From Macrostomum lignano (lineage: Eukaryota): a DNA stretch of 64,000 nucleotides. Of this stretch, positions 10,066-61,060 are shown one piece after another. Made by a program: the position numbers and the translations under genes. Under the pieces are notes generated by a model. That model did no database searches, had not been told where the DNA came from, and saw only the letters and a list, made by a program, of their open reading frames with translations. Within the stretch, counting starts at the first letter, position 1, and each line of letters begins with the position of its first letter. The stretch lies in the NCBI GenBank assembly GCA_002269645.1, contig NIVC01001315.1:186001-250000 (forward strand), read 5' to 3'.

Positions 10066-10408
10066 TGGGGCCGGGCCATTGGTAGACTGCAGATGGATCA
10101 TCGCTATAAACTACAGGCGTTCGATCTTTACTACATTAATTTGCCCGTAGTTTTAAGACAAATGAAGTGCAGCTTCTTGGTGATGGTGCTTTGTCACGAA
10201 TAAAGGCAAGTTCGGTTGCTCGATCAAATACTTGAATATTAGCGAATGTGAAGATTACTAATCACGTTAAATTAAAAGCATTGCATATTGCTTGAAATTC
10301 ACTGATCACATGCAGCACAGCATCAAGATTGCTTCTTTATCGGGAATTGTTGGACCGCATTCGGCACTGAAGAGTTGGAACGAAGTTTAACTGAGCTTCT
10401 GGTGCTAC

Positions 10409-10668
10409 CGACACCTCTCCTGACCTCCTGTGGGCACCACCGCTCCCGATCTCCTTCAGTGGGCATCACCGCTCCCGACCTCCTTCAGTGGGCCCACCGC
10501 TCCCGACCTCCTTCAGTGGGCCCACCGCTCCCGACCTCCTTCAGTGGGCACCACCGCTCCTGACCTCCTTCAGTGGGCACCACCGCTTCTGACCTCCTTC
10601 AGTGGGCACCACCGCTCCTGACCTCCTTCAGTGGGCACCACCGCTTCTGACCTCCTTCAGTGGGCACC
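10409..10668. repeat. Minisatellite, ~9 copies of a 27-29-bp unit CACCGCTCCTGACCTCCTTCAGTGGGCAC
   Basis: Direct tandem copies visible. Confidence 0.9.
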
Positions 10669-35600: not shown

Positions 35601-38600
35601 TCGTCCAGGCCGAGGACGGCGTACTGAGTCGGCTGGTCAGGCGGGCACAGCAGGGCGCGCCGGGCGGAGTGGCTGCAGAGCACGCGGTCGCACCAGCCGG
35701 GCAGGCGGGTGGCCATGTAGTCGGTGGCCGCGCCCGGCGCCTGGCAGTCCTCGCTGAACGGGTAGGTCGGCGGGAAGGTCACGGGGAACTCAAACAGGTG
35801 CTGGTCGAACGATTTCAGCTCGAAGTCGAGTTCGTTAAGCTGCGATGGGGGCGGCAGTGAGGTATGCGGGGAGCTGCGGCCATGCAGTGATGCAAGTGCT
35901 TCAGCCACACACCATTCGCACATCAGTCACACATCATTATCACATAATTCATATTATCATCATTCATCATCTCATCATCTGATTCATCATTATCACATCA
36001 GTCACATAATTATCACATCAGTCGCACATCATTATCACATCAGTTGCACATCATTAACACATAATTCATACATCAGTCCCACACCATTCGCACATCATGC
36101 ACGCAGCACAGTCTCACCCAGCAGTTCTTGTTCTCATAGAACTCATTAGCGCCGTTGTCCGAGCGCCGCTCGAACAGCTTCTTGCCCACCGACAGCAGGC
36201 AGCCGCCGTTCTCGCCGTTACCGGCGGCCAGGAAGTCGACGCGGCTCGGCCGGCCGCTCTTGTCCGACTGCTCCCGCCGCTCGGCGCCGTCCGCGACCGC
36301 CTGTGCAAGAAAAGACGGAAGCATGAGCCGAGGGGAATTCCACAGGGGAATAGGGGACCTGAGACTGGGGGAATTCCACAGGGGAATAGGGGACCTGAGC
36401 CTGGGGTAATTCCACAGGGGAATTGGGGACCTGAGCCTGGGGGAATTCCACAGGGGAATAGGGGACCTGAGACTGGGGGAATTCCACAGGGGAATAGGGG
36501 ACCTGAGCCTGGGGTAATTCCACAGGGGAATTGGGGACCTGAGCCTGGGGGGATTCCACAGACGAAATGGGGACCTGAGCCTGGGGGAATTCCACAGGGG
36601 AATTGGGGACCTGAGCCTGGGGGAATTCCACAGACGAAATGGGGACCTGAGCCTGGGGGAATTCCACAGACGAAATGGGGACCTGAGCCTGGGGGAATTC
36701 CACAGGGGAATAGGGGACCTGAGCCTGGGGGAATTCCACAGGGGAATAGGGGACCTGAGCCTGGGGGAATTCCACAGGGGAATAGGGGACCTGAGCCTGG
36801 GGGAATTCCACAGGGGAATTGGGGACCTGAGCCTGGGGGAATTCCACAGGGGAATTGGGGACCTGAGCCTGGGGGAATTCCACAGGGGAATAGGGGAGCT
36901 GAGCCTGGGGGAATTCCACAGGGGAATAGGGGACCTGAGCCTGGGGGAATTCCACAGGGAAATTGGGGAGCTGAGCCCGAGGGAATTCCACAGGGAAATT
37001 GGGGAGCTGAGCCTGGGGGAATTCCATAGGGGAATTGGGGAGCTGAGCCTGGGGGAATTCCACAGGGGAATAGGGGACCTGAGCCTGGGGGAATTCCACA
37101 GGGGAATAGGGGAGCTGAGCCTGGGGGAATTCCACAGGGGAATAGGGGAGCTGAGCCCGAGCTGTCCGCAGTATTTCACAGGCAAACATTGGCAAAACTC
37201 GGAGGCCCAACCCTGAGATAGCCGACCATGTCCAGGCGGAAGTTAAAGTCGCCGAACAGAAAGGTCGGGAGTTCGATGCTCGCCGACCCGTTGAGCAGCT
37301 GGTCGAGCGTCCAGTTGAAAGCGCCGCGTCTGAAGTCCGCGTAGATGGACGGCGTCTGCGGGACGGAACGGCTGCTATGATTGGATATCTGCCGCCTGTG
37401 ACTACTGGATATCTGCCGTCTGTTACTACTGGATATCTGCCGCCTGTGACTACTGGACATTTGCCGTCTGTGACTACTGGATATCTGCCGTCTGTGACTA
37501 CTGGATATCTGCCGTCTGTGACTACTGGATATCTGCCGTCTGTGACTACTGGATATCTGCCGTCTGTGACTACTGGATATCTGCCGTCTGTGACTACGGG
37601 ATATTTGCCGCCTGTGACTACGGGATATTTGCCGTCTGTGACTACGGGATATCTGCCGTCTGTGACTACTGGATATCTGCCGCCTGTGGCTACTTGATAA
37701 CTGACATTTATTACTACTGGATATCTGCCGCCTGTGACTACTGGACATTTGCCGTCTGTGACTACTGGATATCTGCCGTCTGTGACTACTGGATATCTGC
37801 CGTCTGTTACTACTGGATATCTGCCGTCTGTGACTACTGGATATCTGCCGTCTTTGACTACGGGATATCTGCCGCCTGTGACTACTGGATATCTGCCGCC
37901 TGTGGCTACTGGATAACTGACATTTATTACTCTGGATAACTGACATTTATTACTCTGGATAACTGACATTTATTACTCTGGATAACTGACATTTATTACT
38001 CTGGATAACTGACATTTATTACTCTGGATAACTGACATATATTACTCTGGATAACTGACATTTATTACTCTGGATAACTGACATTTATTACTACTGGATA
38101 ACTGACATTTATTACTCTGGATAACTGACATTTATTACTCTGGATAACTGACATTTATTACTCTGGATAACTGACATTTATTACTCTGGATAACTGACAT
38201 TTATTACTCTGGATAACTGACATTTATTACTCTGGATAACTGACATTTATTACTCTGGATAACTGACATTTATTACTCTGGATAACTGACATTTATTACT
38301 CTGGATAACTGACATTTATTACTCTGGATAACTGACATTTATTACTCTGGATAACTGACATTTATTACTCTGGATAACTGACATTTATTACTCTGGATAA
38401 CTGACATTTATTACTACTGGATAACTGACATTTATTACTCTGGATAACTGACATTTATTACTACTGGATAACTGACATTTATTACTCTGGATAACTGACA
38501 TTTATTACTCTGGATAACTGACATTTATTACTCTGGATAACTGACATTTATTACTCTGGATAACTGACATTTATTACTCTGGATAACTGACATTTATTAC

Positions 38601-41600
38601 TCTGGATAACTGACATTTATTACTCTGGATAACTGACATTTATTACTCTGGATAACTGACATTTATTACTCTGGATAACTGACATTTATTACTCTGGATA
38701 ACTGACATTTATTACTCTGGATAACTGACATTTATTACTCTGGATAACTGACATTTATTACTCTGGATAACTGACATTTATTACTCTGGATAACTGACAT
38801 TTATTACTCTGGATAACTGACATTTATTACTCTGGATAACTGACATTTATTACTCTGGATAACTGACATTTATTACTCTGGATAACTGACATTTATTACT
38901 CTGGATAACTGACATTTATTACTCTGGATAACTGACATTTATTACTACTGGATAACTGACATTTATTACTACTGGATAACTGACATTTATTACTCTGGAT
39001 AACTGACATTTATTACTCTGGATAACTGACATTTATTACTCTGGATAACTGACATTTATTACTCTGGATAACTGACATTTATTACTCTGGATAACTGACA
39101 TTTATTACTCTGGATAACTGACATTTATTACTCTGGATAACTGACATTTATTACTACTGGATAACTGACATTTATTACTCTGGATAACTGACATTTATTA
39201 CTCTGGATAACTGACATTTATTACTCTGGATAACTGACATTTATTACTACTGGATAACTGACATTTATTACTACTGGATAACTGCCGTCTGTGACATCCA
39301 CATCCTGCAGAGTAACTGCCACATCCTATGGGATAACTATAACATCATATAAAATTATATCTGCCTACTGGATGACTGCCCTATAAATAGAACAATGCTT
39401 CTGCGATATCTGCCTATCTGCCAAACTTACCCGAGACATGCTCTCCAGATTTGAGTCGTCGTGAAAGAGGTGCACATTGACTAAGTCAAAGCTAAGCCGC
39501 CCCACCTGCCAGCGGGTGCGCATGTAGCCTTTGCGAGACCAGGTGCGCTGCGGGCCGAACGGGAGGGTGGGAGCTGCAGGGCCGATTGATATTAAACTGG
39601 GGTAGCACCCGGCACCGGGTGAATAAGGGGCTGAGGTAGGCTAGCACCAGGTGCACATGAGCCCAGGTGGGCTAGCACCAGGTGCACATGAGCCCAGGTG
39701 GGCTAGCACCAGGTGCACATGAGCCCAGGTGGGCTAGCACCAGGTGCACATGACAAATGCAAACACCAATGACAACACACATAGCAGACAACACACATGG
39801 CAGACAACTCACATTGGGAAAAAGTTCCAATGGAAATTTCTGCTTGTCCTTTTCGCCCACCGATTCGATGGAACCGTCGTAGACCTGAAAGCAACGTCGG
39901 CGTGCGTTACATGACAAGATTTCAACGAGAGAACTTTATAATCGTATGAGAGAAAAGGAGCAATACGAAGGTAAAGATTCAGATCCTCAGTTGCTGGGCC
40001 AGCCTCCCAGATCCCCAGTCGCTGGGCCAGCCTCCCAGATCCTCAGTTGCTGGGCCAGCCTCCCAGATCCCCAGTCGCTGGGCCAGCCTCCCAGATCCTC
40101 AGTTGCTGGGCCAGCCTCCCAGATCCCCAGTCGCTGGGCCAGCCTCCCAGATCCTCAGTTGCTGGGCCAGCCTCCCAGATCCCCAGTCGCTGGGCCAGCC
40201 TCCCAGATCCTCAGTTGCTGGGCCAGCCTCCCAGATCCCCAGTCGCTGGGCCAGTCCCCCAGATCCTCAGTTGCTGGGCCAGCCTCCCAGATCCTCAGTC
40301 GCTGGGCCAGTCCCCCAGATCCTCAGTTGCTGGGCCAGCCTCCCAGATCCTCAGTTGCTGGGCCAGTCCCCCAGATCCTCAGTTGCTGGGCCGCCCTATC
40401 AGATCCTCAGTTGCTGGGCCGCCCTATCAGATCCTCAGTTGCTGGGCCGCCCTATCAGATCCTCAGTTGTTGGGCCGCCCTATCAGATCCTCAGTTGCTG
40501 GGCCGCCCTATCAGATCCCCTGTCGCTGGGCCAGCTTCCCAGATCCCCAGTCGCTAGGCCTCGCTCCTGACTCTTTCTAATTAATCAATCCAGCACAATA
40601 TCGTAAAAGCCGCAGCCTCGGCGTGCTGCAATACGGACGAGGCGATCCCAGCGCATCAGCTGGAGCCGCCAGAAGGCAAAAATCTGGCAGCCGTTTTTGG
40701 CAGACGGGTTTGAGCCGTTGCTGGGGCTCCGGGCGGCTTAGAGATTAATGGCTGGGGTTTGGCCTCGCAGACTCAGTGGGGAATCAAAAGTGCACGGGAG
40801 AACTCAGAGTTCGGAGCAGAGCAGAGACGATGGCTGCTCAAATATTTATTGACATCGGGCTGGCTTTGAAGAGCCGAGAGAGGCGTCAGTCCGCCTGGAG
40901 CGGGTCGATAGCCAAAGGCAAGTCAAACAGATCCGGGTGGAAGCAGATTTCGGAGTGCAAAGAAGCCACATATCTCGGAGCAGACTCTGCAGTATCAGAT
41001 GGCGCGGATATAAAAGAGCCACCATGTCAGACAATCCGGGTCAGATTTTCAGTGTGGGTCAGGGTGAGATTCTCAGTGTGGGTCAGGGTCAGATTCTCAG
41101 TGTGGGTCAGGGTCAGATTCTCAGTGTGGGTCAGGGTGAGATTCTCAGTGTGGGTCAGGGTCAGATTCTCAGTGTGGGTCAGGGTGAGGTTCTCAGTGTG
41201 GGTCAGGGTCAGATTCTCATTGTGGGTCAGGGTGAGATTCTCAGTGTGGGTCAGGGTGAGATTATCAGTGTGGGTCAGGGTGAGATTCTCGGTGTGGGTC
41301 AGGGTGAGATTCTCAGTGTGGGTCAGGGTGAGATTCTCAGTGTGGGTCAGGGTGAGATTCTCAGTGTGGGTCAGGGTGAGATTCTCAGTGTGGGTCAGGG
41401 TCAGGGTGAGATTCTCAGTGTGGGTCAGGGTCAGGGTGAGATTCTCAGTGTGGGTCAGGGTCAGGGTGAGATTCTCAGTGTGGGTCAGGGTGAGTTTCTC
41501 AATGTGGGTCAGGGTGAGATTCTCAGTGTGGGTCAGGGTGAGATTCTCAGTGTGGGTCAGGGTGAGATTCTCAGTGTGGGTCAGGGTGAGATTCTCAGTG

Positions 41601-44600
41601 TGGGTCAGGGTGAGATTCTCAGTGTGGGTCAGGGTGAGATTCTCAGTGTGGGTCAGGGTGAGATTCTCAGTGTGGGTCAGGGTCAGGGTGAGATTCTCAG
41701 TGTGGGTCAGGGTGAGATTCTCAGTGTGGGTCAGGGTGAGATTTTCAATAATTATCAATACCATGGGTTCTCAGTTGGGTTCAAAATAAACCTGAATGTC
41801 CGTCACGAGAGCTCCCAGACTCACCTTGGTGTCTTTAACGTTGACAAAGTCGGAGCTGGCGAAGTCCCAGATGCGGATGTCAACAACTCGCGAGTGTACG
41901 AAGTAAAGCGAGCCCAGGGCCTGTGGAGGGATGGGATCAGTGAGTCATGGCTCTGTGGGATCAGTGAGTCATGGCTATATGGGTGCTGTGGGCGATATAT
42001 CTATGGGTGGTGTCGGTTTTTATAACTCTGTAGATTTTGTGAGCCTGTGTGTGACGGTCATGGCTCTTTGATGGTTGGGTCATGGCTCTGTGCTGTCTAA
42101 GAATGTGTGATTCTCGTTTCTGTGGTCCACAACAGACTCAGAGCCAGCACGAACCGTAAAGGTTTCAGCAGTTTTGAAGTCTTCATCTAGGAATATGCGA
42201 ACTCTGTCATAGCTGTTTAGGTCTGGCGACGCCAGGAGATCTCTGCAAAATTGATTACAGGTGAGTCATTGATAAATGCCAATATCATTCAAAATCAACT
42301 AATTCCTTACTAAAGCAATAAATCAATCAATCTCCTCCCCATTGATCATCAATCAATCAATCGATCTGCTCGCCCATCGATCATCAATCAATCAATCTGC
42401 TAGCCCATCGATCATCAATCAATAAATCTGCTAGCCCATCGATCATCAATCAATCAATCAATCTGCTCGCCCACCGATCATCAATCAATCAATCTGCTCG
42501 CCCATCGATCATCAATCAATCAATCTGCTCGCCCACCGATCATCAATTAATTAGTCTGCTCGCCCATCGATCATCAATCAATCAATCAATCTGCTCGCCC
42601 ACCGAGCATCAATTAATCAATCTCCTCCTCATCGATCATCAATCAATCAATCAGTCTGCTCGCCCATCGATCATCAATCAATCAATCAATCTGCTCGCCC
42701 ACCGATCATCAATTAATCAATCTGCTCGCCCACCGATCATCAATCAATCAATCTGCTCGCCCACCGATCATCAATTAATCAATCTGCTCGCCCACCGATC
42801 ATCAATTAATCAATCTGCTCGCCCATTGATCAACAATCAATCAATCAGTCTGCTCGCCCACCGATCATCAATCAATCAATCAATCTGCTCGCCCACCGAT
42901 CATCAATCAATCAATCTGCTCGCCCACCGATCATCAATCAATCAATCTGCTTGCCCACCGATCATCAATTAATCATTCTGCTCGCCCATTGATCATCAAT
43001 CAATCAATCTGCTCGCCCACCGATCATCAATCAATCAATCTGCTCGCCCACCGATCATCATCAATCAATCAATCTGCTCGCCCATCGATCATCAATCAAT
43101 CAGTCTGCTCGCCCATCGATCATCAATCAATCTCCTCCTCATCGATCATCAATCAATCAATCAATCTGCTCGCCCATTGATCATCAATCAATCAATCTGC
43201 TCGCCCATCGATCATCAATCAATCAATCAATCTGCTCGCCCATTGATCATCAATCAATCAATCTGCTCGCCCATCGATCATCAATCAATCAATCTGCTCG
43301 CCCATCGATCATCAATCAATCAATCAATCTGCTCGCCCATTGATCATCAATCAATCAATCTGCTTGCCCATCGATCATCAATCAATCAATCTGCTCGCCC
43401 ATCGATCATCAATCAATCAATCAATCTGCTCGCCCATTGATCATCAATCAATCAATCTGCTCGCCCGCCGATCATCAATCAATCAGTCTGCTCGCCCATC
43501 GATCATCAATCAATCAATCAATCTGCTCGCCCACCGATCATCAATCAATCAATCTGCTCGCCCACCGATCATCAATCAATCAATCTGCTTGCCCACCGAT
43601 CATCAATTAATCATTCTGCTCGCCCATTGATCATCAATCAATCAATCTGCTCGCCCACCGATCATCAATCAATCAATCTGCTCGCCCACCGATCATCAAT
43701 CAATCAATCTGCTCGCCCATCGATCATCAATCAATCAATCAATCTGCTCGCCCACCGATCATCAATCAATCAATCAATCTGCTTGCCCACCGATCATCAA
43801 TTAATCATTCTGCTCGCCCACCGATCATCAATCAATCAGTCTGCTCGCCCATCGATCATCAATCAATCAATCAATCTGCTCGCCCACCGATCATCAATCA
43901 ATCAGTCTGCTCGCCCATCGATCATCAATCAATCAATCAATCTGCTCGCCCACCGATCATCAATCAATCAATCTGCTCGCCCACCGATCATCAATCAATC
44001 AATCTGCTCGCCCATCGATCATCAATCAATCAATCAATCTGCTCGCCCACCGATCATCAATCAATCAATCAATCTGCTTGCCCACCGATCATCAATTAAT
44101 CATTCTGCTCGCCCATTGATCATCAATCAATCAGTCTGCTCGCCCACCGATCATCAATCATCACAGTAATCTTACTGAATCCACTTTTTCACGTTCGGCA
44201 TTGACTGGGCAAAGTTTTTACCGCCGACCTCCTGGCAGTGCAGAGCGATGAAGTCGGGGTCTTTGTCCCTGACGACCTGCATAATTGGCAGTTTGTGCAC
44301 TCTTGACATCCAGATATCAAATACCCTCGGCAAAATGTTAAAGTTTCCACCCCGGAAACCAGTGGGCAACTTTTTTCTCAGATCTCAGAGCCGCAAGTGA
44401 CGCAATTTACACCAGGCCCGCGGTTCTCGTCTCAAAGGTGGGCGATGGTGCGATTCGCGTCACAAAGCCCTACTTTAGGAGAAGGAAGTCTCCAGTCTGG
44501 CTAGAGTTAGATTAAACCTGCCCCTTGTTGACCACCGGTTTCGAGATGGTAAACTTTGTCGAGAATAGCTTAAATTTTTAAACATGCAGCATAATTTTTG

Positions 44601-46017: not shown

Positions 46018-47096
46018 GGGTCCACCCCAACTGCCAGCCGGAAAACTGCCAGCTGGAAAACTGCGAGCCGACAACTGCCAGCCGGAAAACTGCCAGCCGA
46101 CAATTGCCAGCCGACAACTGCCAGTCGACAACTGCCAGTCGACAATTGCCAGCCGAGAAAACTGCCAGCCGGAAAACTGCCAGCCGACAACTGCCAGTCG
46201 ACAATTGCCAGTCGACAATTGCCAGCCGAGAAAACTGCCAGCCGGAAAACTGCCAGCCGACAACTGCCAGTCGACAACTGCCAGCCGACAAGTTCTAGAT
46301 AATTGAATCTACTGTAGCCTACTTATTAGCTAAGTAAAAAGCACGAAACTGTTTGGCTAGTAAAAGGCTTGTGGGGTAGCCTTAAATGTCGCCCTTCCCT
46401 TCCCTAAATTTTTCAGATTTTCTGTAATGCCTATTGTAAATATTTCTGTATTGAAAGTTTATTTACTTTATTATTTAATTTGCGATTGCGATTACTATAT
46501 GACGCAATCCTAGATAAGTCTATTAAATTACTTTACTTAAATAAAGCTTTCAAAGAAAGAGCAAAGGCTACCTAAAATACGAAATTTGAATGCCTTCTCC
46601 TTCACATCCATACTTCTAATGGAAATCTGAAAAATTTAGGGAATGGAAGGGCGACATTTAAGGCTACCCCACAAGCCTTTTGCTAGCCAAACAGTTTCGT
46701 GCTTTTTACTTAGCTAATAAGTAGGCTACAGTAGATTCAATTATCTAGAACTTGTCGGCTGGCAGTTGTCGGCTGGCAGATTTCTCGGCTGGCAGTTGTC
46801 GGCTGGCAGTTTTCCGGCTGGCAGTTTTCTCGGCTGACAATTGTCGACTGGCAATTGTCGACTGGCAGTTGTCGGCTGGCAGTTTTCCGGCTGGCAGTTT
46901 TCTCGGCTGGCAATTGTCGGCTGACAGTTGTCGGCTGGGAGTTGTCGGCTGGCAATTGTCGGCTGGCAGTTGTCGACTGGCAGTTGTCGGCTGGCAATTG
47001 TCGGCTGGGAGTTGTCGGCTGGCAATTGTCGGCTGGCAGTTTTCCGGCTGGCAGTTGTCGGCTGGCAGTTTTCCGGCTGGCAGTTGGGGTGCTCCC
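46018..47096. mobile_element. Foldback (Mutator-like) element, 1079 bp, long inverted arms with tandem subrepeats, 9-bp TSD
   Basis: Termini GGGTCCACCCCAACTGCC / GGCAGTTGGGGTGCTCCC. TSD GCTCTGACA at 46009-46017 and 47097-47105. AACTGCCAGCCGAC arrays plus ~125 bp of unique sequence (46297-46423 versus 46622-46748) are inverted. Confidence 0.9.
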
Positions 47097-47712
47097 GCTC
47101 TGACATTCATCAGGACAAAACTGATTCTGCAGTGGGCATTCGATAGTTTTCTTGAGATTTTACTTTTTACAATAAACCAATCACAATGCAGTCACAATTT
47201 AAATGCGTGTAGTAATGCAGGCCTCATGTAAGCTTTGCTTTACAAGTCCGCTGAATACATTGTAAATGCGCATGCTAACCCAATTGCATAGATTACCGCA
47301 AAAATGTTCTTCTTGAACAAATTTATAAAATTAAGACGCAAATTGAATAGGGCAAAATCAGTCATGGCAACCGGCCGCTTGTAGCCAAGCTCACCGATGG
47401 AATCCGGAGCCGCGTACATGCACGTAACTTTTTACTTAATAGAAGATTGGTACCTGAACGACAGTCAATAATCAAGTGGTTTTAGATAAGCACCTCGAGA
47501 AGTATTCGTATGGTCCTTCAGATGAAAACTTCGGACTAAGCCAATTAAAGTTCTTAAAAAGTATATTTTCATAAGAAAACCAGTATAAAGTGTTTTGTTG
47601 TTCCAATTAGACATTTTTGCTGAAAAATTAAAATAATCAACTTGTATATATAGTAAGAGTCTAGAGTCGCTAACTATCTGCAATTTAGAGTTTCTCCTGG
47701 TTGAATTTCAGA

Positions 47713-49775
47713 TCACACAGGAGTGACACCTTTCACTGCCTTATTGTACTTAAAGAACAAAAAGCCCAGAGCGGCCCCGGTGAGGAGGTTCGTGGGCAGC
47801 AAAACGCCCAGAGTGATTGCCGCGGCCGTGTTGAAAACGAAGTTGCAGCTGGGGACCGGACCAATCGGTGGCCTTGTGCTGGGCTCAGGCGTTGCCGTTG
47901 TGGCGGTGGTCGTGGTCGAGGTCGTTGTCGAGGTCATGGCCGTGGTGGTGGGAGAAGACTCAACCAGAGTGTTTACATAGTTAAGCGTTTGATCCCAGAA
48001 GCCGCAGTCGTCACGTCGGAAGCCATACGGCACGTTGTAGCTCGACGCAAAAGTTTCAAGGTCGATAGTGAAGTTGTGGTAGAACCGGTGGCTGCTGTTG
48101 TACTTGGCCCAGACTTCCTCCTCGTCCCTAGGCACGGGATCGCCCGTCTCAACAAACTTGGCCAGGTAGTCCATCATGCGGACAGACAGATCGGCCTGCT
48201 CGGGTTTTACGATCGGAGCATCGTCGGTCGGGTTTCCGAAGAAGTAGTACGCGTCCGAGCCGTGAGAGGCGCCGATGTAGTTGGGTGTGTTGTCCTGCTC
48301 CGAGAACACGTAGAAGTAGACGTCGTTCGACGTTCCCTGCATTAAAAAATAGTTCGAAAATGCTGCAATCATACACTGCTCAGAGTTGCATGACTAGTTA
48401 AAGCGATATTACAGATGCTAGATAAGCTAACCTGGTTCTTCTCGGACATCTTCTCGGCGAACTCGTTCGCAGCGCTCACGAAGAGCCGATCAGAGGCTCC
48501 ATCCAGCCACCGCTTGTACTGCGCCGGTCCCGATGGGTTTCCGAAGTCCGTCAGTCGGTCGTACATCACATTCTGTCCAGTAACGCTCAGTAGGTCCGGT
48601 TGCCTCTCGTAGTACCTGAACTGGTCCCGGAGCACTCTCTCATAAGTGGCCCTGTCAGCCAGCTGGTCCTGTGTGAGCTTCTGCGACTCCAGGCTGCGCT
48701 CAACGTACACAGCAGCTTCTGCATTCGTCACTCCAATCATGAGACTCATCCCCTCAAAACGACCATTACGGAAGGCCTCAATGGGATCCTCCTTGATGTA
48801 GTCACCGTCGATGACTGGAGGAAACTCGACGCCCTGGAACAGACGGTTGTAGTTAAGCTGCTCGTTGACAAGCTTCTCGGGGGAAACCTCACGAAGGCAC
48901 TGGATTGTGGCATTGAAGTCGCCCTGATCCGGAAGAGGGCAGCTGAGCTGACGGACGGCAAAGTCCAAGTGAAGCCTCTCTACTAGGCTGGTGTCGTTCC
49001 GCACCGACCAGAAGACCATCGGAGAGCCGCCCAGCATGACGGCTCGCTTGAAGTACGTCTTCGTATTATCGTTCAGCATGTGGTACCCGACGGCTGCAGC
49101 TCCGGCGTCCAGACCCATCAGCGTCACCGTCTGCAGGTTTCCTCCGAACCTCTCGATGTTTTTATGCACGAACTCGAGTCCCAAGGCCTGATCTTTCAAG
49201 CCCATGTTTCCAGGCGCCACGGTAGAACTGAGTCGAAGAAAGCCGAGTACGCCAAGTCGGTACTGGAGACTCACGGTGACGATCGACTCGTGGGCTGTTA
49301 GAACACGGCCCGAATTGATTTCTTCGATGATGGAGCCGGTCTCGAAGCGGCCTCCATGGATCCACACGAGCACTGGGTAGCTTCCGGGGTTCGAGGAGGT
49401 TCCGTTGTACGGCGTCCAGATGTTGGCAGCGATGCAGCTCTCCGACATGGACTGGTAGTCTCCGCTCGCTCCGGGGTCTTGGTAGCACCTGCGGTCGAAA
49501 TCGAGCACATCCTGGACGAAGTCCCAATTGGTGAAGACGGGATGAGCAAATCGAAACTCTCCGGTGGGAACCTTGGCGAAGTTGATGCCGAGGAAGGAAC
49601 CGATGTGTACCATGTTTTTGTCTCCAGATCCTTTTGTCTCAATCACGGCGCCTCTGATAGGGCCTTGAGTTGTGGTGACGTTGAGGTACCGCACGATGGT
49701 GAAGTTCCTCTGGGCAGAGACCGCCGCGGCTGACAGAGCCAGCAGCAGCAGCAGGGTAGTGAGGGTCGATTCCAT
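47713..49775 (-). CDS. Cholinesterase/carboxylesterase-fold type I membrane protein A, catalytic Ser replaced by Asp; exons 49775-48432 and 48336-47713; 655 aa
   Basis: Signal peptide; FLGINFAKVP; SESCIAANIWTP; VLVWIHGGRF; VSLQYRLGVLGFL; GNMGLKDQALGL; VTLMGLDAGAAAV; GVTNAE; GASHGSD; Thr-rich stalk; hydrophobic segment; tail KYNKAVKGVTPV*. Confidence 0.93.
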
Positions 49776-50012
49776 GGCCAGTCTGTGTGGTGTGAGAGGT
49801 CTCTGGATCTGCTCCGCGGCCTCTGGCTCGGGCGAACGCAGCTAATATTTCTGCGCTGATTAGATACTGTAAGTTTGTTTTTAGTAACCAAGGCAACTAG
49901 AATTTTAACTTTTATTGATAAGGCCTTAGTAGACATATTGGTCTTCGCTCAGAGGCGCATTTGGTTTCACAAAAATTAATTTTGGAAACGCCACTCAATA
50001 CCAGCAATTTCG

Positions 50013-52048
50013 ATGGCATCGACCCTCACTACCCTGCTGCTGCTGCTGGCTCTGTCAGCCGCGGCGGTCTCTGCCCAGAGGAACTTCACCATCGTGCGGT
50101 ACCTCAACGTCACCACAACTCAAGGCCCTATCAGAGGCGCCGTGATTGAGACAAAAGGATCTGGAGACAAAAACATGGTACACATCGGTTCCTTCTTGGG
50201 CATCAACTTCGCCAAGGTTCCCACTGGAGAGTTTCGATTTGCTCATCCCGTCTTCACTAAGTGGGACTTCGTCCAGGATGTGCTCGATTTCGACCGCAGG
50301 TGCTACCAAGACCCCGGAGCGAGCGGAGACTACCAGACCATGTCGGAGAGCTGCATCGCTGCCAACATCTGGACGCCGTACAACGGAACCTCCTCGAACC
50401 CCGGAAGCTACCCAGTGCTTGTGTGGATCCATGGAGGCCGCTTCGAGACCGGCTCCATCATCGAAGAAATCAATTCGGGCCGTGTTCTAACAGCCCACGA
50501 GTCGATCGTCACCGTGAGTCTCCAGTACCGACTTGGCGTACTCGGCTTTCTTCGACTCAGCTCTACCGTGGCGCCTGGAAACATGGGCTTGAAGGATCAG
50601 GCCTTGGGACTCGAGTTCGTGCATAAAAACATCGAGAGGTTCGGAGGAAACCTGCAGACGGTGACGCTGATGGGTCTGGACGCCGGAGCTGCAGCCGTCG
50701 GGTACCACATGCTGAACGACAATACGAAGACGTACTTCAAGCGAGCCGTCATGCTGGGCGGCTCTCCGATGGTCTTCTGGTCGGTGCGCCAAAGCACAAC
50801 CGACGTGGAGAGGCTTCACGCAAAATTCGCCAGGGAGAAGCTGAACTGCGATCCTGATCGACTCGGTCTTGATGAAGCATTGAAGTGCTTGCGAGAAGTG
50901 GGTCCCGAGGCACTGATTAATGCTCAAAAAGAGTTCATCAAGGATTTTCAAGGTATTGAGTTTCCCCCGGTGATCGACGGTGACTACATCAAGGAGGACC
51001 CGGTTGTGGCGCTGCGAGGCCTCCGATTCGAACCAAAGCAGCTAATTATTGGCTTCACAAACTCAGAGGCCGCTACTTACGTAGAGTCATCGCTTCGTGA
51101 CAAGGGTTGGTCAAAGGAGGATCTTCAGGATCCCGCCAAGTACCGCAGCGTTATCGAGGACAACTTCCGCACCTACGAGCGAGAGCCGGACATCATGTCT
51201 ACCGCCGCCCGCAAGTTCATGACTGACAGATTCACCAGCTTTAGCAATCCTTCCGCTGAAGTCAACTTCCGGCGATGGCTCGATGCCGCCTCGGACCGCC
51301 TGTTCGTCTGCGCAGCCAACGAGTTCGCGGATCTTTCTACGCGGGTGACCGGTCAGGTGAGGGTTCCTTCAGTGCGCTTTTTTTTGTGTGTACATGTATA
51401 CAAGGACTCCTGCAAACAATAATGATTCAGTTTCCATCCAAGTTCGCCTTGTATCAAACATCCATCTACTTATTTCAGTCGGTGGACGTCTACTTCTACG
51501 TGTTCTCCGAGCAAGACAACACACCCAACTACGTCGGCGCCTCCCATGGCTCGGACGCGTACTACTTCTTCGGAAACCCGACCGACGATGCGCCGATCGT
51601 GTCGCCTGAGCAGGCCCAGCTGTCCGTCCGCATGATGGACTACCTGTCCAGGTTCGTGGCTACCGGGGACCCGGTGCCCAGGGACAACGACAGGGTCTGG
51701 GCCAAGTTCAACATCAGCCAGAAGTACTACCACAACTTCACCGCCGATTCAAGCGCCGGTTACAACATCAAATACGGTTTTCACCGCGATGACTGCGGCT
51801 TCTGGGACAAGACGCTGAAGTACGTCAACAGTCTCCAGTCAACGGCGCTAGCCCCAGCACCAGAGGATGTCCCGAAGGTCCGCGTAGTCCGAGACGTTCA
51901 CACTAACCTGACCTTAAATGAAGCGGGGATCTGCGATAATGTCGTGAACGCCACCACCCTGGCCATCATGATCCCCCTGCTCATCAGCAATGTTGCCCTG
52001 CTGGGCGCGCTGGTGTGGCTCCTGATCAAGTACAACTCGCTGGGCTGA
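50013..52048 (+). CDS. Cholinesterase/carboxylesterase-fold membrane protein B, catalytic Ser replaced by Asp; exons 50013-51356 and 51479-52048; 637 aa
   Basis: Same motifs as copy A (GLDAG with GAC at 50679-50681, GFTNSE, GASHGSD). Intron at the same position, after 1344 coding nt. C-terminal hydrophobic segment and short tail KYNSLG*. Confidence 0.93.
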
Positions 52049-53256
52049 GCTGGCGGTTTGAGCAGTCGAAACTGAGCGGATTTGACTTTCTAACTAACAA
52101 TGTAGAGTGCACTGCACGAGCTCGTTCTTAGATTTATACATTTATTTATATATCTATACATATCGGTTTCAAACAAGGCTATTTGAGACGCGCTTAATAG
52201 GTAAACTAATTCGAGAAATTGATAATCTGTTTTTTTTCCAACGACCAACTCTTCAATGTTCCAACCAAACAAATAAATTTTATAAATTTTATATTTCCGT
52301 TTCTTAGTGAGGTGGTTTTTTAGTGAGTAAAATTACCAACAAAGACTGGTCCTTGTGTCAAGTTTCACTTCTTCTGTAGCACTTCATCTCTACATTTTTT
52401 AATCCCTAGTCTAATGGGACCACGTTTAGTGACACCTTTGCTTTGCCTGCAGTTTTGAGCATTCATATATGGCAGCAAGCACAACTCTAAAGACTTCGCT
52501 AAGGTTAGCCAAGACAGCAACCATTGACAACACCAGCCATCAGGCAGGTTCGATCAGAGAGAAAAGCGCAGCGCCTCCACGGGGGCAAGTAGCGGTTGCC
52601 AGTAGCAACCGGTGGCAACAAAACTCTCTCTGGGGTGGCCTGTCGCTTATCTTAAGGGAATTTCAAGCGGTCCAAATCTCAAGTGGCGCGCACTGACATG
52701 CTTAAGAATACTTTTTTGCCCCCCTCACGCATCTTGCAGATAAGCGGAGCCGCAGCTGATGCCCCAGCTGGCACCACTCGGCTCGGAGCCGCCTTCGGGT
52801 CAGGCCGCGCCACCCCCCCCCCTATCAGCTCCTCCGACAGTAGAGAGAATTTTCTCTCTCGCCGTCTGCATTTGAAACTTTCTGCCGCTGCTTCGATAGG
52901 GCGCATTACTTTTAGAGGCCATCAGCCGTTATCTCGGTTCACTGTTCAATATTTTTCAAGTTTCACCTGCCCGCAGGTTGCTGCAGAAGTGGTTTTATCT
53001 TCTACAGAGTTTCATATCAGCGGGTCTACAGCAGTCAGCTATTGCAATTTGATCTTGACATTCTAGATTCAACCAGATTTTACTGCTCAAAATTTTTATC
53101 AACACTTTTGTTGGCGAGTCTAAGTTTTCTCTTAGACATGAACTTTTAAAACTTGGATACGCAGTGGTGGCAAAAGTCAGCAAACAATCCTGTTTTGATT
53201 CGAGGAGCATGCAGGCTGATCCCAGACCATCTCTCCTCATCTAAGGTCAAACTTTG

Positions 53257-53775
53257 ACACATCCCAACTCTGACACATCCCAACTCTGGCACATCCCAAC
53301 TCTGGCATATCCCAACTCTGACACATCCCAACTCTGACACATCCCAACTCTGACACATCACAACTCTGACACATCCCAACTCTGACACATCCCAACTCTG
53401 ACACATCACAACTCTGACACATCCCAACTCTGACACATCCCAACTCTGACACATCCCAACTCTGACACATCCCAACTCTGACACATCCCAACTCTGACAC
53501 ATCCCAACTCTAGCACATCCCAACTCTGACACATCCCAACTCTGACACATCACAACTCTGACACATCACAACTCTGACACATCCCAACTCTGACACATCC
53601 CAACTCTGACACATCCCAACTCTGACACATCCCAAGTCTGACACATCCCAACTCTGACACATCCCAACTCTGACACATCCCAACTCTGACACATCCCAAC
53701 TCTGACACATCCCAACTCTGACGCATCCCAACTCTGACACATCCCAACTCTGACGCATCCCAACTCTGACACATT
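53257..53775. repeat. 16-bp minisatellite ACATCCCAACTCTGAC
   Basis: ~32 tandem copies. Confidence 0.95.
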
Positions 53776-54469
53776 ACTTTATTTCTTTTCCCCACCAAAA
53801 TTCAAAATTCGGTGTGTCACTAAAAGCTGAAAGTTACTACTGCAGCTGGTTCTGGAGCAGTAGTGCGAATTGAGTCCACCTCGCTGTCTTCAATATTCAG
53901 CCTGGGAGGCGCCTCACCTCCATGCATCCCGAATTACGCAACGGAGTTGAGCAGTGTAGCAGAACCTCAATGCCAGGTGTGCGGGAGCAGCCTGAGCGGC
54001 CATAAAGGCAGAAGTCACCTCCGCTCTCACTCAGGTGGCGCCAAAGCTCGGCACCCATGTTGAGCATGACTCACTGGGCCTTTGCTATGAGATTTTCGTG
54101 AGGTCGCCTTTGATAAACTACACGGCAGGTTCTGGTAATTGGAGTCGGGGCCGCCGCTTGTCTCCTCCCCCCTTTGTCCTCGGCTGATCCCCGCAAATCG
54201 TCCGAGGCCCCCCAGCCCCGCCTCTGTGGGCAGCGGAGAATCTTGGAGGATCGGCGGGCAGGAAATTCCCTGTGCAACGGAGTCGCGTGCGGGCAATAAA
54301 GGGGAAAATCTGCGGGGATCACAAAGGTGGGAGGAGACCAAGAGGAGAAGGGGTGGGGCAGAGGAGAGCCGGATCGGAGGAAGAGGCTATGGGGATAAAA
54401 AGGCAGTTCAGGTGCTCCATTTCTGCTTGTCATGCGTGGCTGCGGCACGTGAGGCTAGAGATGGACTGT

Positions 54470-54729
54470 TGAGTGAGTGAGTGAGTGAGTGAGTGAGTGA
54501 GTGAGTGAGTGAGTGAGTGAGTGAGTGAGTGAGTGAGTGAGTGAGTGAGTGAGTGAGTGAGTGAGTGAGTGAGTGAGTGAGTGAGTGTGTGAGTGAGTGA
54601 GTGAGTGAGTGAGTGAGTGAGTGAGTGAGTGAGTGAGTGAGTGAGTGAGTGAGTGAGTGAGTGAGTGAGTGAGTGAGTGAGTGAGTGAGTGAGTGAGTGA
54701 GTGAGTGTGTGAGTGAGTGAGTGAGTGAG
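54470..54729. repeat. (GAGT)n microsatellite
   Basis: ~65 copies. Confidence 0.98.
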
Positions 54730-56468
54730 AAGGCAGCAATTAGATTGGCAGTGAGGAATTAAATAACCAGCCAGCTGCTGAGTGCAGCTTCATCATCATA
54801 ATCCATCAATAGCCTGGACTATGCCTGGCGCAATGCCTCCACTCTGAAATTGCATTTTTCGTATTTATGCGAAATATTCGAGTATTCGAGCTCGCCGAGC
54901 AGTCGAACCTATCGCCGTCGAATAGCGCTCAGAAAATGAGATGCCGAGGCGGAGAGTCGATGGATGACGCAATCAGGGGGGGGGCGATGCTGCGCAGCCT
55001 GCGGGGACTTTGGCGGCGCTGTAATTGGATTTGGCGCAGCCCGAACCCTGCGGCTACTTGAGCTGGGAAATAATTCCCCCCGCCAGCCCGCTCGCTCGAG
55101 ACGCAGACGGACAGCCAAACTCTGCGATGCGGAGTGTGAGACCATCTGACAGCATCTGACAGCGGAACCTGCCGCCTCCGTGGGGAACTTGGCGATTGGT
55201 TTTGACGCGGGAAATCGGCTGAGGCGTCGCGGCGCCGGTAATGCGCGCCCGGGCAGGAAATGAATGGGAAAGCTGGCTGGTGACAAGGACAAAGACACAA
55301 GAACCTGGACAAAGACTGATTGGAAGATTGCGGCTGGCTTCCCCGCCCCTTTCCTTGCCTTCCCCCCCCCGGGTCACGGAAGCCGCAACTCCGTTGTCTG
55401 GGTGAAATTGGATTCAACCCGGCATTCGGGAGAGCTGAGAGATGAGGCGCGGGTCGGCCGTGACTCACCGGGCCGGGTGAGACAATCGGCAGTCCGTCAG
55501 CGCCAGCGAAATTGAATTCGGCGTGAAATCGGCCGCCCTCATCAGCTTATCAGCCCGGCAGGCCGCAGAAGTGCGCCGAGGCCGCCCCGCCGAAATTCGA
55601 TCAGTCCAGCGCGCGAGGTCGCCAGCGAACTGAAAAAGCGGCGGCGCGGGGACACTTAAAAGGTCTGTGACCCTCCCCGACCCCTCCCGACCCCCTCACT
55701 GCAGAATGGTTCAGAGCTTTTATTCAACTAAATTCTCGCCGAAAGTTCGAGAGCTCAAAGAGGGGTCGGGTGAGGCGAGAAAATCTATCGAGTGCCGGGG
55801 CTCAGGCAGGCAGCCTGAGAGCTGAGAGAAAAAGCCTGATTTTCCTAGAAACTGTCAATCAAAGCGCCGGCATTCGCTCACAGGCCAGCTTTGAGCCGGG
55901 CAAAGGAAGTGAAAATGCAAAGCCGGGGTGCCTTCTTCATCAGGGCAGCTCGGGACACAGCGCGAAAGACTGAAAGTCACAAGAGCCCGGCTGCTCAAAG
56001 TCAAGACCTTCAGCCCCTTCCCGGTGCTCAAGGCGGCCCGAATCCCGGGGATTTTTGCTCAGTTCTCAAGATTCTTCGCGGCCTTCTAGGTGCGCGAAAG
56101 AAACTCGAATTGATGAAGCTGGCTGCCACGGAGGCTAGGGGGGGGGGGCTCAAACCTGCTAATTGTCGGGCGGGAAGAAAGCGGAGGGGATCAAACATCG
56201 AAAGTGGGAGAATAAGGGGAGCTGCACTGCATGGGGGCGGTTCGGTTCTCGCCTGGAGTCGGGAAAGTAAAATGATGGGGCTGCGGTTGCATAACCGGCC
56301 CTTCTGGCCCCCCCCTCAGTAGCCGCATTTTCGAGTGCCCCCCTCCAGCCCCGATGACTGGCCGGCCCACTTGAGTCGGGAGTGACTTGCGCCAGGGAGA
56401 TCCGGGATGCAGAACTGGGTTGGAAGCTCCTACATTTACCTTAGGACTCATGCATATTTCTGGAAACT

Positions 56469-56810
56469 TCAGTTTTTGGGCCAGCCTCCCAGATCCTCAG
56501 CTGCTGGGCCAGCCTCCCAGATCCTCAGTAGCTGGGCCGGCCTCCCAGATCCTCAGCTGCTGGGCCGGCCTCCCAGATCCTCAGTTGTTAGACCAGCCTC
56601 CCAGAACCTCAGTAGCTGGGCCGGCCTCCCAGATCCTCAGCTGCTGGGCCGGCCTCCCAGATCCTCAGTTGTTAGACCAGCCTCCCAGAACCTCAGTAGC
56701 TGGGCCGGCCTCCCAGATCCTCAGCTGCTGGGCCGGCCTCCCAGATCCTCAGCTGCTGGGCCGGCCTCCCAGATCCTCAGTTGCTGTACCAGCCTCCCAG
56801 ATACTCAGTT
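56469..56810. repeat. 28-bp minisatellite, same family as 39980-40556
   Basis: GCTGGGCC(A/G)GCCTCCCAGATCCTCAG units. Confidence 0.92.
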
Positions 56811-57275
56811 GTTACCGACAAGCTTCAAGCTTTTCACAAGCAAACAAGCTTCAGTCCTACTTATTGAAAAGTCACGTTTTACTTGTCATTATTTGTCAGG
56901 CCAGTAAAAGTAGCAAATTGATGGGTTTAAAATTGCATTGATTTAGCCCGGCCGAACTCGATCCCATCCCAATATCGCACTGGAGTGGCGCTCCAGACTT
57001 AAGATCTGGAACTCCTGGAGAGAAGCTGGAAAGAATAATGGGCTACGGCTGGAGTGGGAAAATATCCCTTCTCCAAATTTTAAAGCCCCTTACAACCCCG
57101 TGAGTGGGTGAGAATGAGAGGCAGCAAATGGGAGCTGCCGCCCTCCCCCCAGGCCCTCCTCATTGCCGAGGAAACCCCGAGAAAAAAATATCGCTCGCTT
57201 AGGCAGGACCGGCGCCCAGTCAGACGGAGCAAAATCTCCTGTCCCCCGCCTTGCTCCTAGAAGCACACTGGCAAG

Positions 57276-58325
57276 ATGGCTCCGTTGGAGTTCCTCCCGC
57301 TACTCCTGACCATCCTCCTCTGCGCCCGCGCTGCCGCCGGTTCCAGCGACCGGAGCTCCTTTGACGACGCGTCCGCCTGCGCCCAGCGACCGCCTCCGCG
57401 CCGCAGCCTGACGGAGCGCGTGGGAGGGAAAGTCGTGCGCCAGGAGGTCGAGTTGCGACAGACGGCGGTGCACGGCTGCGTGTGGGCGCTGCCGGGGGGC
57501 AACCGCACCGACTACACCTTGGCGGGCCGCTGCCTGCGCGTCAGCGCCACCATCAGCGTCAGCGAGGAGGACGGCGCCGGCGGCTTTTGGAGGTCGCGCG
57601 CAGTGGCGCCGGCCGACGCCGAGCCGGCGGACCCGCGCCTGACCGGCAAGTGCCGCCTCCGCCGCTCCGTGGACTGCCGTCTGCACCCGGTGGCCTTCTG
57701 GGACCCGCGGCTGCCCTGCGACGAGGCGGCGGCCCTCCGCTGCGCGCAGCTGCCGCGGCTTCACTGGCGCCTGCTGGCGGGCCGCAACGTCAGCCAGACG
57801 CTGATCAGCCTGGTGACTTCGGGGCTGCGCGCCAGAGACGGTGCCGCCTGCGAGTGGGCGCTGCTGGGCGGCTGGGCCGGCGACTTCACTCGCTGGTGGG
57901 CAGCGCCGAGCAGCCGTGCGCGCGGTGCCGCGGCGGCGGCGGCGGCGGCATCGCTGACTGCGTAGCTCCAACGTCGCCGCCTTCGCCACCGCGGATGGGC
58001 TGCGCGGCGCGGCTTGGACCCGACTGCCGCCTGCACCTCACCGCCGCTGACGACCCCGAAGCCGCCTGCCGCCGCTCAAGCCAGCAGCCGCTTCCAGCGT
58101 CGTCGGCGAAGGCGCCAGCAGGGGCAGCGGAGGCGGCGGCAACGGCGGCGACTCCACCGTGGAAGTTGCGGCGACTTCGGCGCTCTTAAGTGCCGTGCTG
58201 GCTGGCTCGTTAGCCGCCAACCTGCGGGCTCTCTGATGAGGGACCAGCCTCTCGGCCTTTTGGCCTTTCAGCTGCTGCTGCTCGGAACTTGGAGACTTCT
58301 TTCGCGTGCTGCCTGCTGCAGCTGA
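57276..58325 (+). CDS. Cys-rich secreted or GPI-anchor-like protein of two internal repeats, interrupted by two compensating frameshifts (~57890 and ~58155)
   Basis: Signal-like MAPLEFLPLLLTILLCARAAAG. Repeat 1: CVWALPGG...DYTLAG...DCRLH...DP..C.....LRC. Repeat 2: CEWALLGG...DFTLVG (frame change)...DCRLH...DP..C...(frame change)CGDFGALKC. Hydrophobic C-terminus LGLLAFQLLLLGTWRLL. Confidence 0.55.
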
Positions 58326-58339
58326 TTGATTCCACTGGG

Positions 58340-58655
58340 TGAATGTTCACCCGCGTGTATACAGGTTCTATCTGAATGTTCACCCTCATCCATACAGACT
58401 CTATCTGAATGTTCACCCGCATGTATACAGACTCTATCTGAATGTTCACCCGCATGCATACAGACTCTATCTGAATGTTCACCCGCACGTATACAGACTC
58501 TATCTGAATGTTCACCCGCATGTATACAGACTCTGTCTGAATGTTCACCCGCATGCATACAGACTCTATCTGAATGTTCACCCGCATGCATACAGACTCT
58601 GTCTGAATGTTCACCCGCATGCATACAGACTCTGTCTGAATGTTCACCCGCGTAC
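58340..58655. repeat. 33-bp minisatellite CTGAATGTTCACCCGCATGTATACAGACTCTAT
   Basis: ~9-10 tandem copies just after the 58325 stop. Confidence 0.93.
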
Positions 58656-60189: not shown

Positions 60190-61060
60190 TTCTCTCTTCT
60201 CTCCTCTCATCTCCCCCCCATTTCTCTTCTCCCCTCATTTCTCCTCCCCCCTCATCTCCCCTCTTTTCATCTCTACTCTTTAATTATCTATCCTCTCCTC
60301 TCATCTCCCCTCTCCCCTCTTCTCTCCACTCCCCTGATCTCCCCTCTCCCCTCATCTCTCCTCTCCCCTCATCTCTCCTCTCCCCTCATCTCTCCTCTCC
60401 TCATCTCTCCTCTCCCCTCATCTCTCCTCTCCCCTCATCTCTCCTCTCCCCTCCTCTCTCCTCTCCTCATCTCTCCTCTCCCCTCATCTCTCCTGTCCCT
60501 TCGTCTCTCCTCTCTAATCATCTATCCTCTCATCTCATCTCTCCCAACTCCAATCATCTCTGCTCACTCCCACAATTTCTCCTCTCTCTCTCCTCTCTCC
60601 TCTCCCCTCATCTCTCCTCTCCCTTCATCTCTCCTCTCCCCTCTTCTCTCCCCTCCTCCCTCCTCTCCTCATCTCTCCTCTCCTCATCTCTCCTCTGTCC
60701 TCTCCCCTCATCTCTCCTGTCCCTTCATCTCTCCTCTCTAATCATCTATCCTCTCATCTCATCTCTCCCAACTCCAATCATCTCTTCTCACTCCCATAAT
60801 TTCTCCTCTCTCTCCCTTCTCTCCTTTCTCGTCTTATCTATCCTCTCTCCCCTAATCTCTTTTCTCTCCCCTCATCTCTCCTCTCCCCTCCTCTCTCCTC
60901 TCCCCTCGTCTCTCCTCTCCCCTCATCTCTCCTCTCCCCTCCTCTCCTCTCCCCTCCTCTCTCCGCTCCTCATCTCTCCTCTCCCCTCATCTCTCCTCTC
61001 CCCTCTTCTCTCCTGTTCTTTCCTCTTCTCTCTCCTCCATTCCTTCTCCTTTCCTCTCTC
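60190..61060. repeat. Pyrimidine-rich (CT) low-complexity tract, CTCTCCTCTCCCCTCAT-like units
   Basis: Nearly all C/T on the + strand. Confidence 0.9.

Follow-up and report, generated by a model that had tools for sequence, protein, structure and literature searches.

Several pairs of adjacent, inverted genes are known to exchange sequence with each other. In Drosophila, the palindromic pairs Amy-p/Amy-d and Hsp70Aa/Hsp70Ab show concerted evolution by ectopic gene conversion (PMC3924832). In Caenorhabditis, conversion acts between head-to-head neighbors a few hundred unique base pairs apart, as in the hsp16 modules and hsp70-7/-8; the tracts often comprise an open reading frame (ORF) or part of one, and conversion raises the allelic diversity of each paralog (PMC3966223). 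The primate genes SIGLEC11 and SIGLEC16, also head-to-head, have undergone repeated, fragmented conversions in their 5′ part, which codes for the N-terminal extracellular region, and selection for N-terminal identity has been argued for this pair (PMC5701461). In sex-chromosome palindromes, intrachromosomal conversion keeps the inverted arms around a unique spacer nearly identical (PMC3403216). Here we analyze a locus of Macrostomum lignano, within a 64,000-nucleotide (nt) stretch (the window; positions 186,001 to 250,000 of contig NIVC01001315.1, assembly GCA_002269645.1), in which two head-to-head paralogs of the COesterase family, gene A on the minus strand and gene B on the plus strand, are separated by a short spacer. 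Our reading, to which we assign a probability of roughly 0.9, is that repeated gene conversion between the arms of a small palindrome keeps the first 776 coding bases of A and B nearly identical. The process is a textbook one, and this locus is a new instance of it; a literature search for the locus itself or for gene conversion in M. lignano found nothing relevant.

A repeat search returned inverted arms at 48969–49775 and 50013–50819, 807 nt long, 97% complementary, and 237 nt apart. Base-by-base comparison from both ATGs delimits a near-identical tract of 776 nt (Table 1), which runs from the A of each ATG to the last base of codon 259, which encodes the R of the motif FWSVR. The two copies are 98.6% identical over this tract, with 11 mismatches (at nt 5, 184, 186, 213, 246, 249, 325, 408, 549, 582, and 708) and three amino-acid differences (E2A, N83K, and S109T). 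Beyond the outer edge, mismatches are dense from nt 777 on; beyond the inner edge, the 25 nt upstream of the two ATGs are unrelated, with 14 mismatches. When the A/B mismatch vector was permuted 2000 times, every 776-nt segment had at least 149 mismatches, compared with the 11 observed. The spacer shows no symmetry, since its in-register match to its own reverse complement is 30%, the chance level.

Divergence between A and B changes abruptly along the genes. By the Nei–Gojobori method, synonymous divergence (dS) is 0.043 in codons 1–259. In codons 260–450, synonymous sites are saturated (proportion of synonymous differences, pS, 0.77), nonsynonymous divergence (dN) is 0.46, nucleotide identity is 56%, and third-position identity is 27–45%. 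At the start of exon 2, which encodes the loop of the catalytic His (codons 451–510), dS is 0.36, and in the tail synonymous sites are saturated again. Third positions differ at 9 of 259 codons in the tract and at 207 of 373 outside it (Fisher p = 3e-49); protein constraint thus cannot account for the identity of the tract. The saturation of synonymous sites beyond the tract supports an old inverted head-to-head duplication. The initial annotation, made from the letters alone, had described identity that starts at the ATGs and stops abruptly after FWSVR, three amino-acid differences (E/A, N/K, S/T), about 190 strongly diverged codons beyond, a second short tract of high identity over the His loop, an asymmetric 237-bp spacer, and an Asp in the nucleophile elbow, and our measurements agree with it on every one of these counts.

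The history of the tract becomes visible when homeologous copies are compared. M. lignano is a recent polyploid, and an assembly of its genome holds three subgenomes with ~2% single-nucleotide polymorphism divergence (PMC10733133). We compared three loci, all from one assembly: the window (A and B), L001 (A′ and B′; contig NIVC01000151.1), and L003 (A″ and B″; contig NIVC01001659.1). L001 is collinear with window positions 47292–58618, ~11.5 kb at 94% identity. L003 is syntenic on both sides, at 96–98% where long BLAST blocks span the gene pair and the flank downstream of it, and at 86–92% further left; its coding sequence outside the arms is 99.65–100% identical to that of the window. Another sequence, L002, is 100% identical to window positions 38000–59775. 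Reading frames are intact in all six genes of the three loci, and the outer boundary of the tract falls at the same nucleotide in each.

Within the tract, 11 informative sites among the window and L001 copies pair the two genes of each locus (A with B, A′ with B′), a single site (the boundary, nt 777) groups the copies by gene type, and none follows the third pattern. The remaining coding sequence has 403 sites that support gene type and not one that supports locus (Fisher p = 9e-21 against the tract). Neighbor-joining bootstraps give {A′,B′} in 100% of replicates in the tract, and the split by gene type in 0% there and 100% in both the middle region and the exon-2 tract. The topology therefore switches along the gene at a discrete breakpoint, a phylogenetic incongruence in which each topology reaches 100% in its own segment. 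Differences over the 776–777 nt of the tract tell the same story: 11–12 between A and B (1.4%), 51 between A and A′ (6.6%), and 23 between B and B′ (3.0%). We also observed that the divergence of the window from L001 is uneven despite the adjacency of the two genes, at 3.7–7% on the A side (intron 11.7%) and 1.0–1.2% on the B side (intron 4.3%). This unevenness points to a mosaic history between the homeologous loci.

Finer features of the arms date some of the exchange. At site 270, both arms carry G in the window, C in L001, and T in L003; T at site 321 is found in both arms of L003, and T at site 471 in both arms of the window. Over nt 184, 186, 213, and 246, the haplotypes are CCCC in A and TGTT in B, TGTT in A″ and CCTT in B″, and CCCC in both A′ and B′. 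These sites and haplotypes imply arm-to-arm exchange in separate loci after their latest split; as a sign of variation shared between the paralogs, the mosaic of CCCC and TGTT over the six copies is suggestive only. Comparison with L003 gives a related result. Within the arms, A and A″ differ at 18 of 776 nt (2.3%) and B and B″ at 8 of 776 (1.0%), versus 0–0.35% of coding sites outside them (Fisher p = 7e-6), and third positions differ at 16 of 259 codons (A) and 6 of 259 (B) in the tract, versus 3 of 396 and 1 of 378 elsewhere. Such an excess within the arms is expected if conversion shuffles the differences between paralogs.

Conversion has also been patchy. A′ contains two islands, at nt 143–171 and 449–483 (L001 positions 10184–10228 and 10489–10538), with 27 private differences, several of them synonymous in conserved codons, and their divergence is about that of the unconverted region. 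On the simplest reading, these islands would be relics of the original A-type sequence that has been overwritten in A and A″. A short-word BLAST search for their donor in the window, L001, and L002 returned only the islands themselves, and the protein search yielded no further paralog. The data show homogenization within sharp limits, recurring once the three loci had separated and leaving patches untouched, and they support conversion that is repeated, patchy, and ongoing. The initial annotation had proposed an old duplication with continuing conversion and a mosaic history; synonymous saturation outside the tract upholds the former, and the grouping of L001 and L003, the states shared between arms, and the unconverted islands uphold the latter. 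The same annotation took the homogenized part, with its Asp elbow, for a structural core and the middle of the protein for a specificity region; both roles are putative, and the homogenization may be selected or may be a passive outcome of retained homology.

A second stretch of elevated identity begins at the start of exon 2 (Table 1). Its informative sites group 34 to 0 by gene type rather than by locus, which makes the tract older than the separation of the loci and most plausibly the remnant of a former conversion that would since have stopped. GC content at third codon positions (GC3) is 0.8–0.9 in this tract and dS is 0.36–0.66; high GC3 together with strong protein constraint at the His loop may contribute to its identity. 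Conversion templated by cDNA, considered because the tract starts at the intron boundary, was rejected: the end of exon 1, which is contiguous with it in the mRNA, is diverged (third-position identity 41%).

Could the arms have become alike only once? A single 5′ replacement, or a partial inverted duplication, before the loci split would have left arms that evolved independently thereafter. The boundary at the same nucleotide in three loci does make the domain older than the split, and A and B are not identical but differ at 11 sites. Independent arms should nevertheless group by gene type in the tract, and they group by locus at 11 sites against 1, with 100% bootstrap for {A′,B′}. Moreover, over the same bases A and B differ less (1.4%) than B and B′ (3.0%) or A and A′ (6.6%), and sites 270, 321, and 471 have states common to both arms of one locus only, so we regard a single event as improbable. 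Rather less credible still is an artifact of assembly or polishing, in which paralogs would have been collapsed into one consensus, a chimeric read would have created the palindrome, or short reads would have been applied across copies during polishing. Polishing did use short reads that are prone to multiple mapping (PMC5730564), and the genome, with its three subgenomes, is known for being difficult to assemble (PMC10733133). Yet three separate contigs have the same head-to-head structure and boundaries, each with differences of its own, and each arm runs from a unique asymmetric spacer into an intact, diverged 3′ half that continues its frame. A missed-adapter palindrome would show neither such a spacer nor diverged flanks, and majority-driven polishing cannot create states private to both arms of one locus. 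Constraint without conversion, in the form of purifying selection with codon bias or RNA-level constraint, fares worst. The N-terminal half of the fold, which the tract encodes, is indeed conserved and holds both the oxyanion motif and the elbow, and GC3 is high along the whole gene, but third positions are 96.5% identical in the tract against ~45% outside, the poorly constrained signal peptide is also identical, and constraint cannot explain the grouping by locus in either sites or bootstraps. For the exon-2 tract alone, its GC3 and dS make constraint a partial alternative to old conversion.

A different kind of alternative accepts conversion but asks why it persists. By analogy with paired receptors, conversion would be maintained by selected coevolution because both membrane proteins would need the same N-terminal face while differing in the rest, so that homogenizing events would be favored and not just tolerated. 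The converted part is the N-terminal half of the ectodomain, and the two proteins differ in their middle region, stalk, anchor, and tail. Purifying selection acts on both genes, and the layout parallels that of SIGLEC11/SIGLEC16 (PMC5701461). Against this, the converted and diverged stretches lie within one globular domain rather than in two modules, and a passive process limited by homology yields the same pattern. We think this explanation unlikely, although it is the least so among the alternatives. A bolder form of it, in which A and B would be paired surface proteins with an obligatorily identical N-terminal half of a domain bearing an Asp-His-Glu triad and with different C-terminal halves, stalks, and anchors, the mini-palindrome serving as their device for coevolution, seems to us slightly less likely again. 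More speculatively still, occasional arm-to-arm crossovers would in that case flip the 237-nt spacer and swap both promoters.

Several points weigh against repeated arm-to-arm conversion or limit what can be said of it. The A′ islands are found in one contig only and are missing from the protein models of the other annotation, and they could have been copied in from an unseen third paralog. The three loci are collinear, so that no inversion of the spacer documents a crossover between arms. GC-biased conversion has left no clear mark, as GC3 is 0.73 in the tract against 0.64–0.70 in the middle region, too small a gap. All of the DNA compared is from one assembly of one species, made with Canu from PacBio data, with Pilon polishing based on Illumina and RNA-seq reads (PMC5730564). 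Six near-identical arms invite cross-mapping, and single mosaic sites could be polishing errors. No single site is decisive for the main conclusions, which draw on three contigs, blocks of sites, and states found in the two arms of one locus and nowhere else.

A simple mechanism would accommodate repeated conversion. The first 776 coding bases of A and B would act as a small palindrome subject to repeated, short-tract, nonreciprocal recombination within the same chromosome: when a break or a stalled fork affects one arm, its partner on the same chromatid or on the sister chromatid would serve as the repair template. Inward, exchange would be limited by the unique spacer, with homology ending at the ATGs; outward, it would be limited at codon 259, where the 56% identity beyond would be too low for pairing. 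With no pairing past codon 259, the outer boundary would be self-maintaining. That boundary most likely originated either through selection for differing C-terminal halves or because drift carried the copies beyond the point at which they can pair. What is known of ectopic recombination in general leads us to infer a pathway of strand-invasion break repair with rejection of mismatched heteroduplex.

The spacer itself is presumed to contain a common divergent promoter and the 5′ leaders of A and B. In L001 and L003 it has the same orientation as in the window and is 97.5–98.7% identical to it. An AG lies 8–10 nt upstream of each ATG (cacAG/actggccATG at 49776–49790 for A; accAG/caatttcgATG at 49998–50012 for B). 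As 38.8% of M. lignano genes are trans-spliced (PMC5730564), these AGs could be spliced-leader acceptor sites, in which case the mature 5′ leaders of both genes would be very short.

The spliced coding sequences are free of stops and encode 655 amino acids (gene A) and 637 amino acids (gene B). Exon 1 of each gene matches the Pfam profile COesterase (PF00135) with 285 bits against a cutoff of 27 (E = 1e-84), exon 2 matches the C-terminal part of the same profile, and the closest solved structures are acetylcholinesterases (E down to 4e-71). Both proteins lack the catalytic serine of the GxSxG motif: their G-L-D-A-G elbow, with Asp at the nucleophile position, aligns with the G-E-S-A-G of acetylcholinesterase (Table 1). 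The remaining triad residues are kept, with Glu352 and His471 of B aligning with the acetylcholinesterase triad; the exon-2 tract of A includes His473. The oxyanion GGG has become GGR, within HGGRF (window positions 50430–50444 in B and 49358–49344 in A). Asp occupies the elbow in all 13 members of the M. lignano clade, and Ser in 68 of 68 other motif-bearing matches; HGGRF likewise occurs in all 13 clade proteins, with the triad His and Glu kept. An Asp-His-Glu triad is not otherwise seen among the family members recovered. Judged from their residues, the Asp-elbow proteins would be either dead esterases or carriers of an unusual Asp-His-Glu triad in the COesterase fold.

Each protein begins with a signal-like segment and has a hydrophobic segment near its C terminus, with Kyte–Doolittle (KD-19) scores of 1.7–2.4, and the protein of gene A has a Thr/Pro-rich stalk. 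The tail past the hydrophobic segment is 6 amino acids in B and 12 in A, and the segment may be a glycosylphosphatidylinositol signal instead of a transmembrane helix. The nearest proteins from outside M. lignano in the protein search are insect and crustacean esterases and acetylcholinesterases at ~29% identity, along with one glutactin-like match at 26%. Since the nearest outside relatives are so distant, the A/B duplication is lineage-specific; no orthologs from other Macrostomum species were among the matches, where the next best was 29% identical, and a tblastn search of the window found no further COesterase genes. In the middle region, dN/dS between homeologs is 0.04–0.07. Both genes are thus under purifying selection, and neither is a decaying redundant copy. 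By BLASTP, the gene B product is 100% identical to the public protein P0001; for P0001 and P0004, which are known from UniRef only, no DNA record is on file. Public models of gene A and of one B copy (PAA69530.1, that is P0005, and P0002) run out of frame within the arm and yield 'RYTSVPSSASTSPRF...'; the misread stretch is at window positions 49298–49642, minus-strand frame, and the genomic frame is intact. These annotation errors are probably due to ambiguous read mapping in the repeats.

Table 1. Coordinates of the palindrome, the two genes, and their main features (window positions)
Feature	Positions	Strand	Basis or remark
Arm A, codons 1–259 of gene A (signal peptide to FWSVR), converted tract	49000..49775	-	11 mismatches to arm B
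Arm B, codons 1–259 of gene B, converted tract	50013..50788	+	Repeat search, base-by-base comparison
Spacer, 237 nt, unique, between ATGs	49776..50012	.	Chance-level self-complementarity
Gene A exon 1, 448 codons, donor CAG/GTTAGC	48432..49775	-	Read from sequence; Pfam COesterase E = 1e-84
Gene A intron, 95 nt, GT..AG	48337..48431	-	Read from sequence
Gene A exon 2, 207 codons + stop: His loop, Thr/Pro-rich stalk, C-terminal hydrophobic anchor	47713..48336	-	
Gene B exon 1, 448 codons, donor CAG/GTGAGG	50013..51356	+	Sequence, Pfam
Gene B intron, 122 nt	51357..51478	+	Read from sequence
Gene B exon 2, 189 codons + stop	51479..52048	+	Read from sequence
G-L-D-A-G elbow in place of GxSxG	B 50673–50687; A 49115–49101	B +; A -	Aligned to GESAG of acetylcholinesterase 4qww
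Asp223 codon of elbow	B 50679–50681; A 49109–49107	B +; A -	
Older high-identity tract, A side, exon 2 start, includes His473	48068..48331	-	264 nt at 85%
Older high-identity tract, B side, includes His471	51478..51741	+	264 nt at 85%

The surroundings of the gene pair are rich in repeats. At 46026–47100 lie two arrays of a 14-nt unit (CAACTGCCAGCCGA), inverted around a few hundred unique bases, whose arms reach 193 nt at 96%. Just to the right of these arrays, at 47292, BLAST collinearity with L001 ends, whereas L003 stays syntenic. Minisatellite arrays occur throughout the window, with units of 14–66 nt in up to 65 copies (38 Tandem Repeats Finder rows with a score of at least 300); examples are found at 33049–34375, 37909–39284, 42321–44160, 53250–53774, and 60204–61014. 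There is also a (TGAG)65 run at 54470–54729. Minisatellite copy numbers vary between the homeologous loci. On the minus strand at 3328–6620, two ORFs of 766 and 331 amino acids, the first with a reverse transcriptase domain (PF00078, E = 7e-28), are probably a retrotransposon of the non-long-terminal-repeat class.

The A/B locus offers a compact case of conversion in part of a gene: a domain of 0.78 kb with an edge inside an exon that is sharp to one nucleotide, unconverted islands, and three homeologous replicates. It may be useful for studying how conversion domains shrink and become fixed, how paralogs escape from conversion, and how conversion inflates the apparent divergence between subgenomes of a recent polyploid. 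There is a practical side as well, in that public gene models are corrupted within the arms and short-read mapping is ambiguous there. The general significance is modest, the process being a familiar one.

With respect to protein family, the closest parallel is with the cholinesterase-like adhesion molecules neuroligin, gliotactin, neurotactin, and glutactin, membrane-bound proteins with a COesterase-fold ectodomain in which a triad residue is replaced (PMC9958613). A and B likewise lack the triad Ser and are predicted to be membrane bound. They differ in that Ser is replaced by Asp with His and Glu kept, and in a cytoplasmic tail of just 6–12 residues. Orthology to the adhesion molecules and a substantial cytoplasmic domain are both lacking, as the best outside matches are esterases and acetylcholinesterases at ~29% and the tails have 6 and 12 amino acids.

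With respect to conversion, A and B resemble the Amy and Hsp70 pairs in being adjacent mirror-image paralogs that are closer to each other within a genome than to their orthologs. In those pairs homogenization is limited to coding sequence while the flanks evolve independently, and in A and B it likewise begins at the ATG. There, however, it covers the whole coding region, whereas in A and B it covers only the first 40% (codons 1–259 of ~640), with a sharp boundary inside an exon and saturation in the rest. The resemblance to SIGLEC11/SIGLEC16 lies in the head-to-head arrangement, the homogenized 5′ part, and the different 3′ parts. The SIGLEC genes are 9 kb apart and share a 3-kb tract over several exons and introns, whereas A and B are separated by 237 nt and their tract lies within one exon; and whereas the homogenized and diverged parts of the SIGLEC pair are separate modules, the A/B boundary cuts through a single alpha/beta-hydrolase domain. 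The Caenorhabditis pairs belong to another gene family and phylum, and the A/B pair adds a comparison of three loci; the excess divergence between the arms of the window and L003 fits the raised diversity per paralog described there. Like the sex-chromosome palindromes, A and B have near-identical arms around a unique spacer. Sex-chromosome palindromes have arms of tens of kilobases to megabases, contain whole genes, and lie on nonrecombining chromosomes. In contrast, the arms of A and B measure 0.78 kb, hold partial genes, and exist in three homeologous copies. Large ampliconic palindromes are defined by many-kilobase arms, whole genes, and identity above 99.9%, and here we find 776 nt, partial genes, and 98.6%. 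The A/B locus thus works in a palindrome-like manner and stands outside the ampliconic class.

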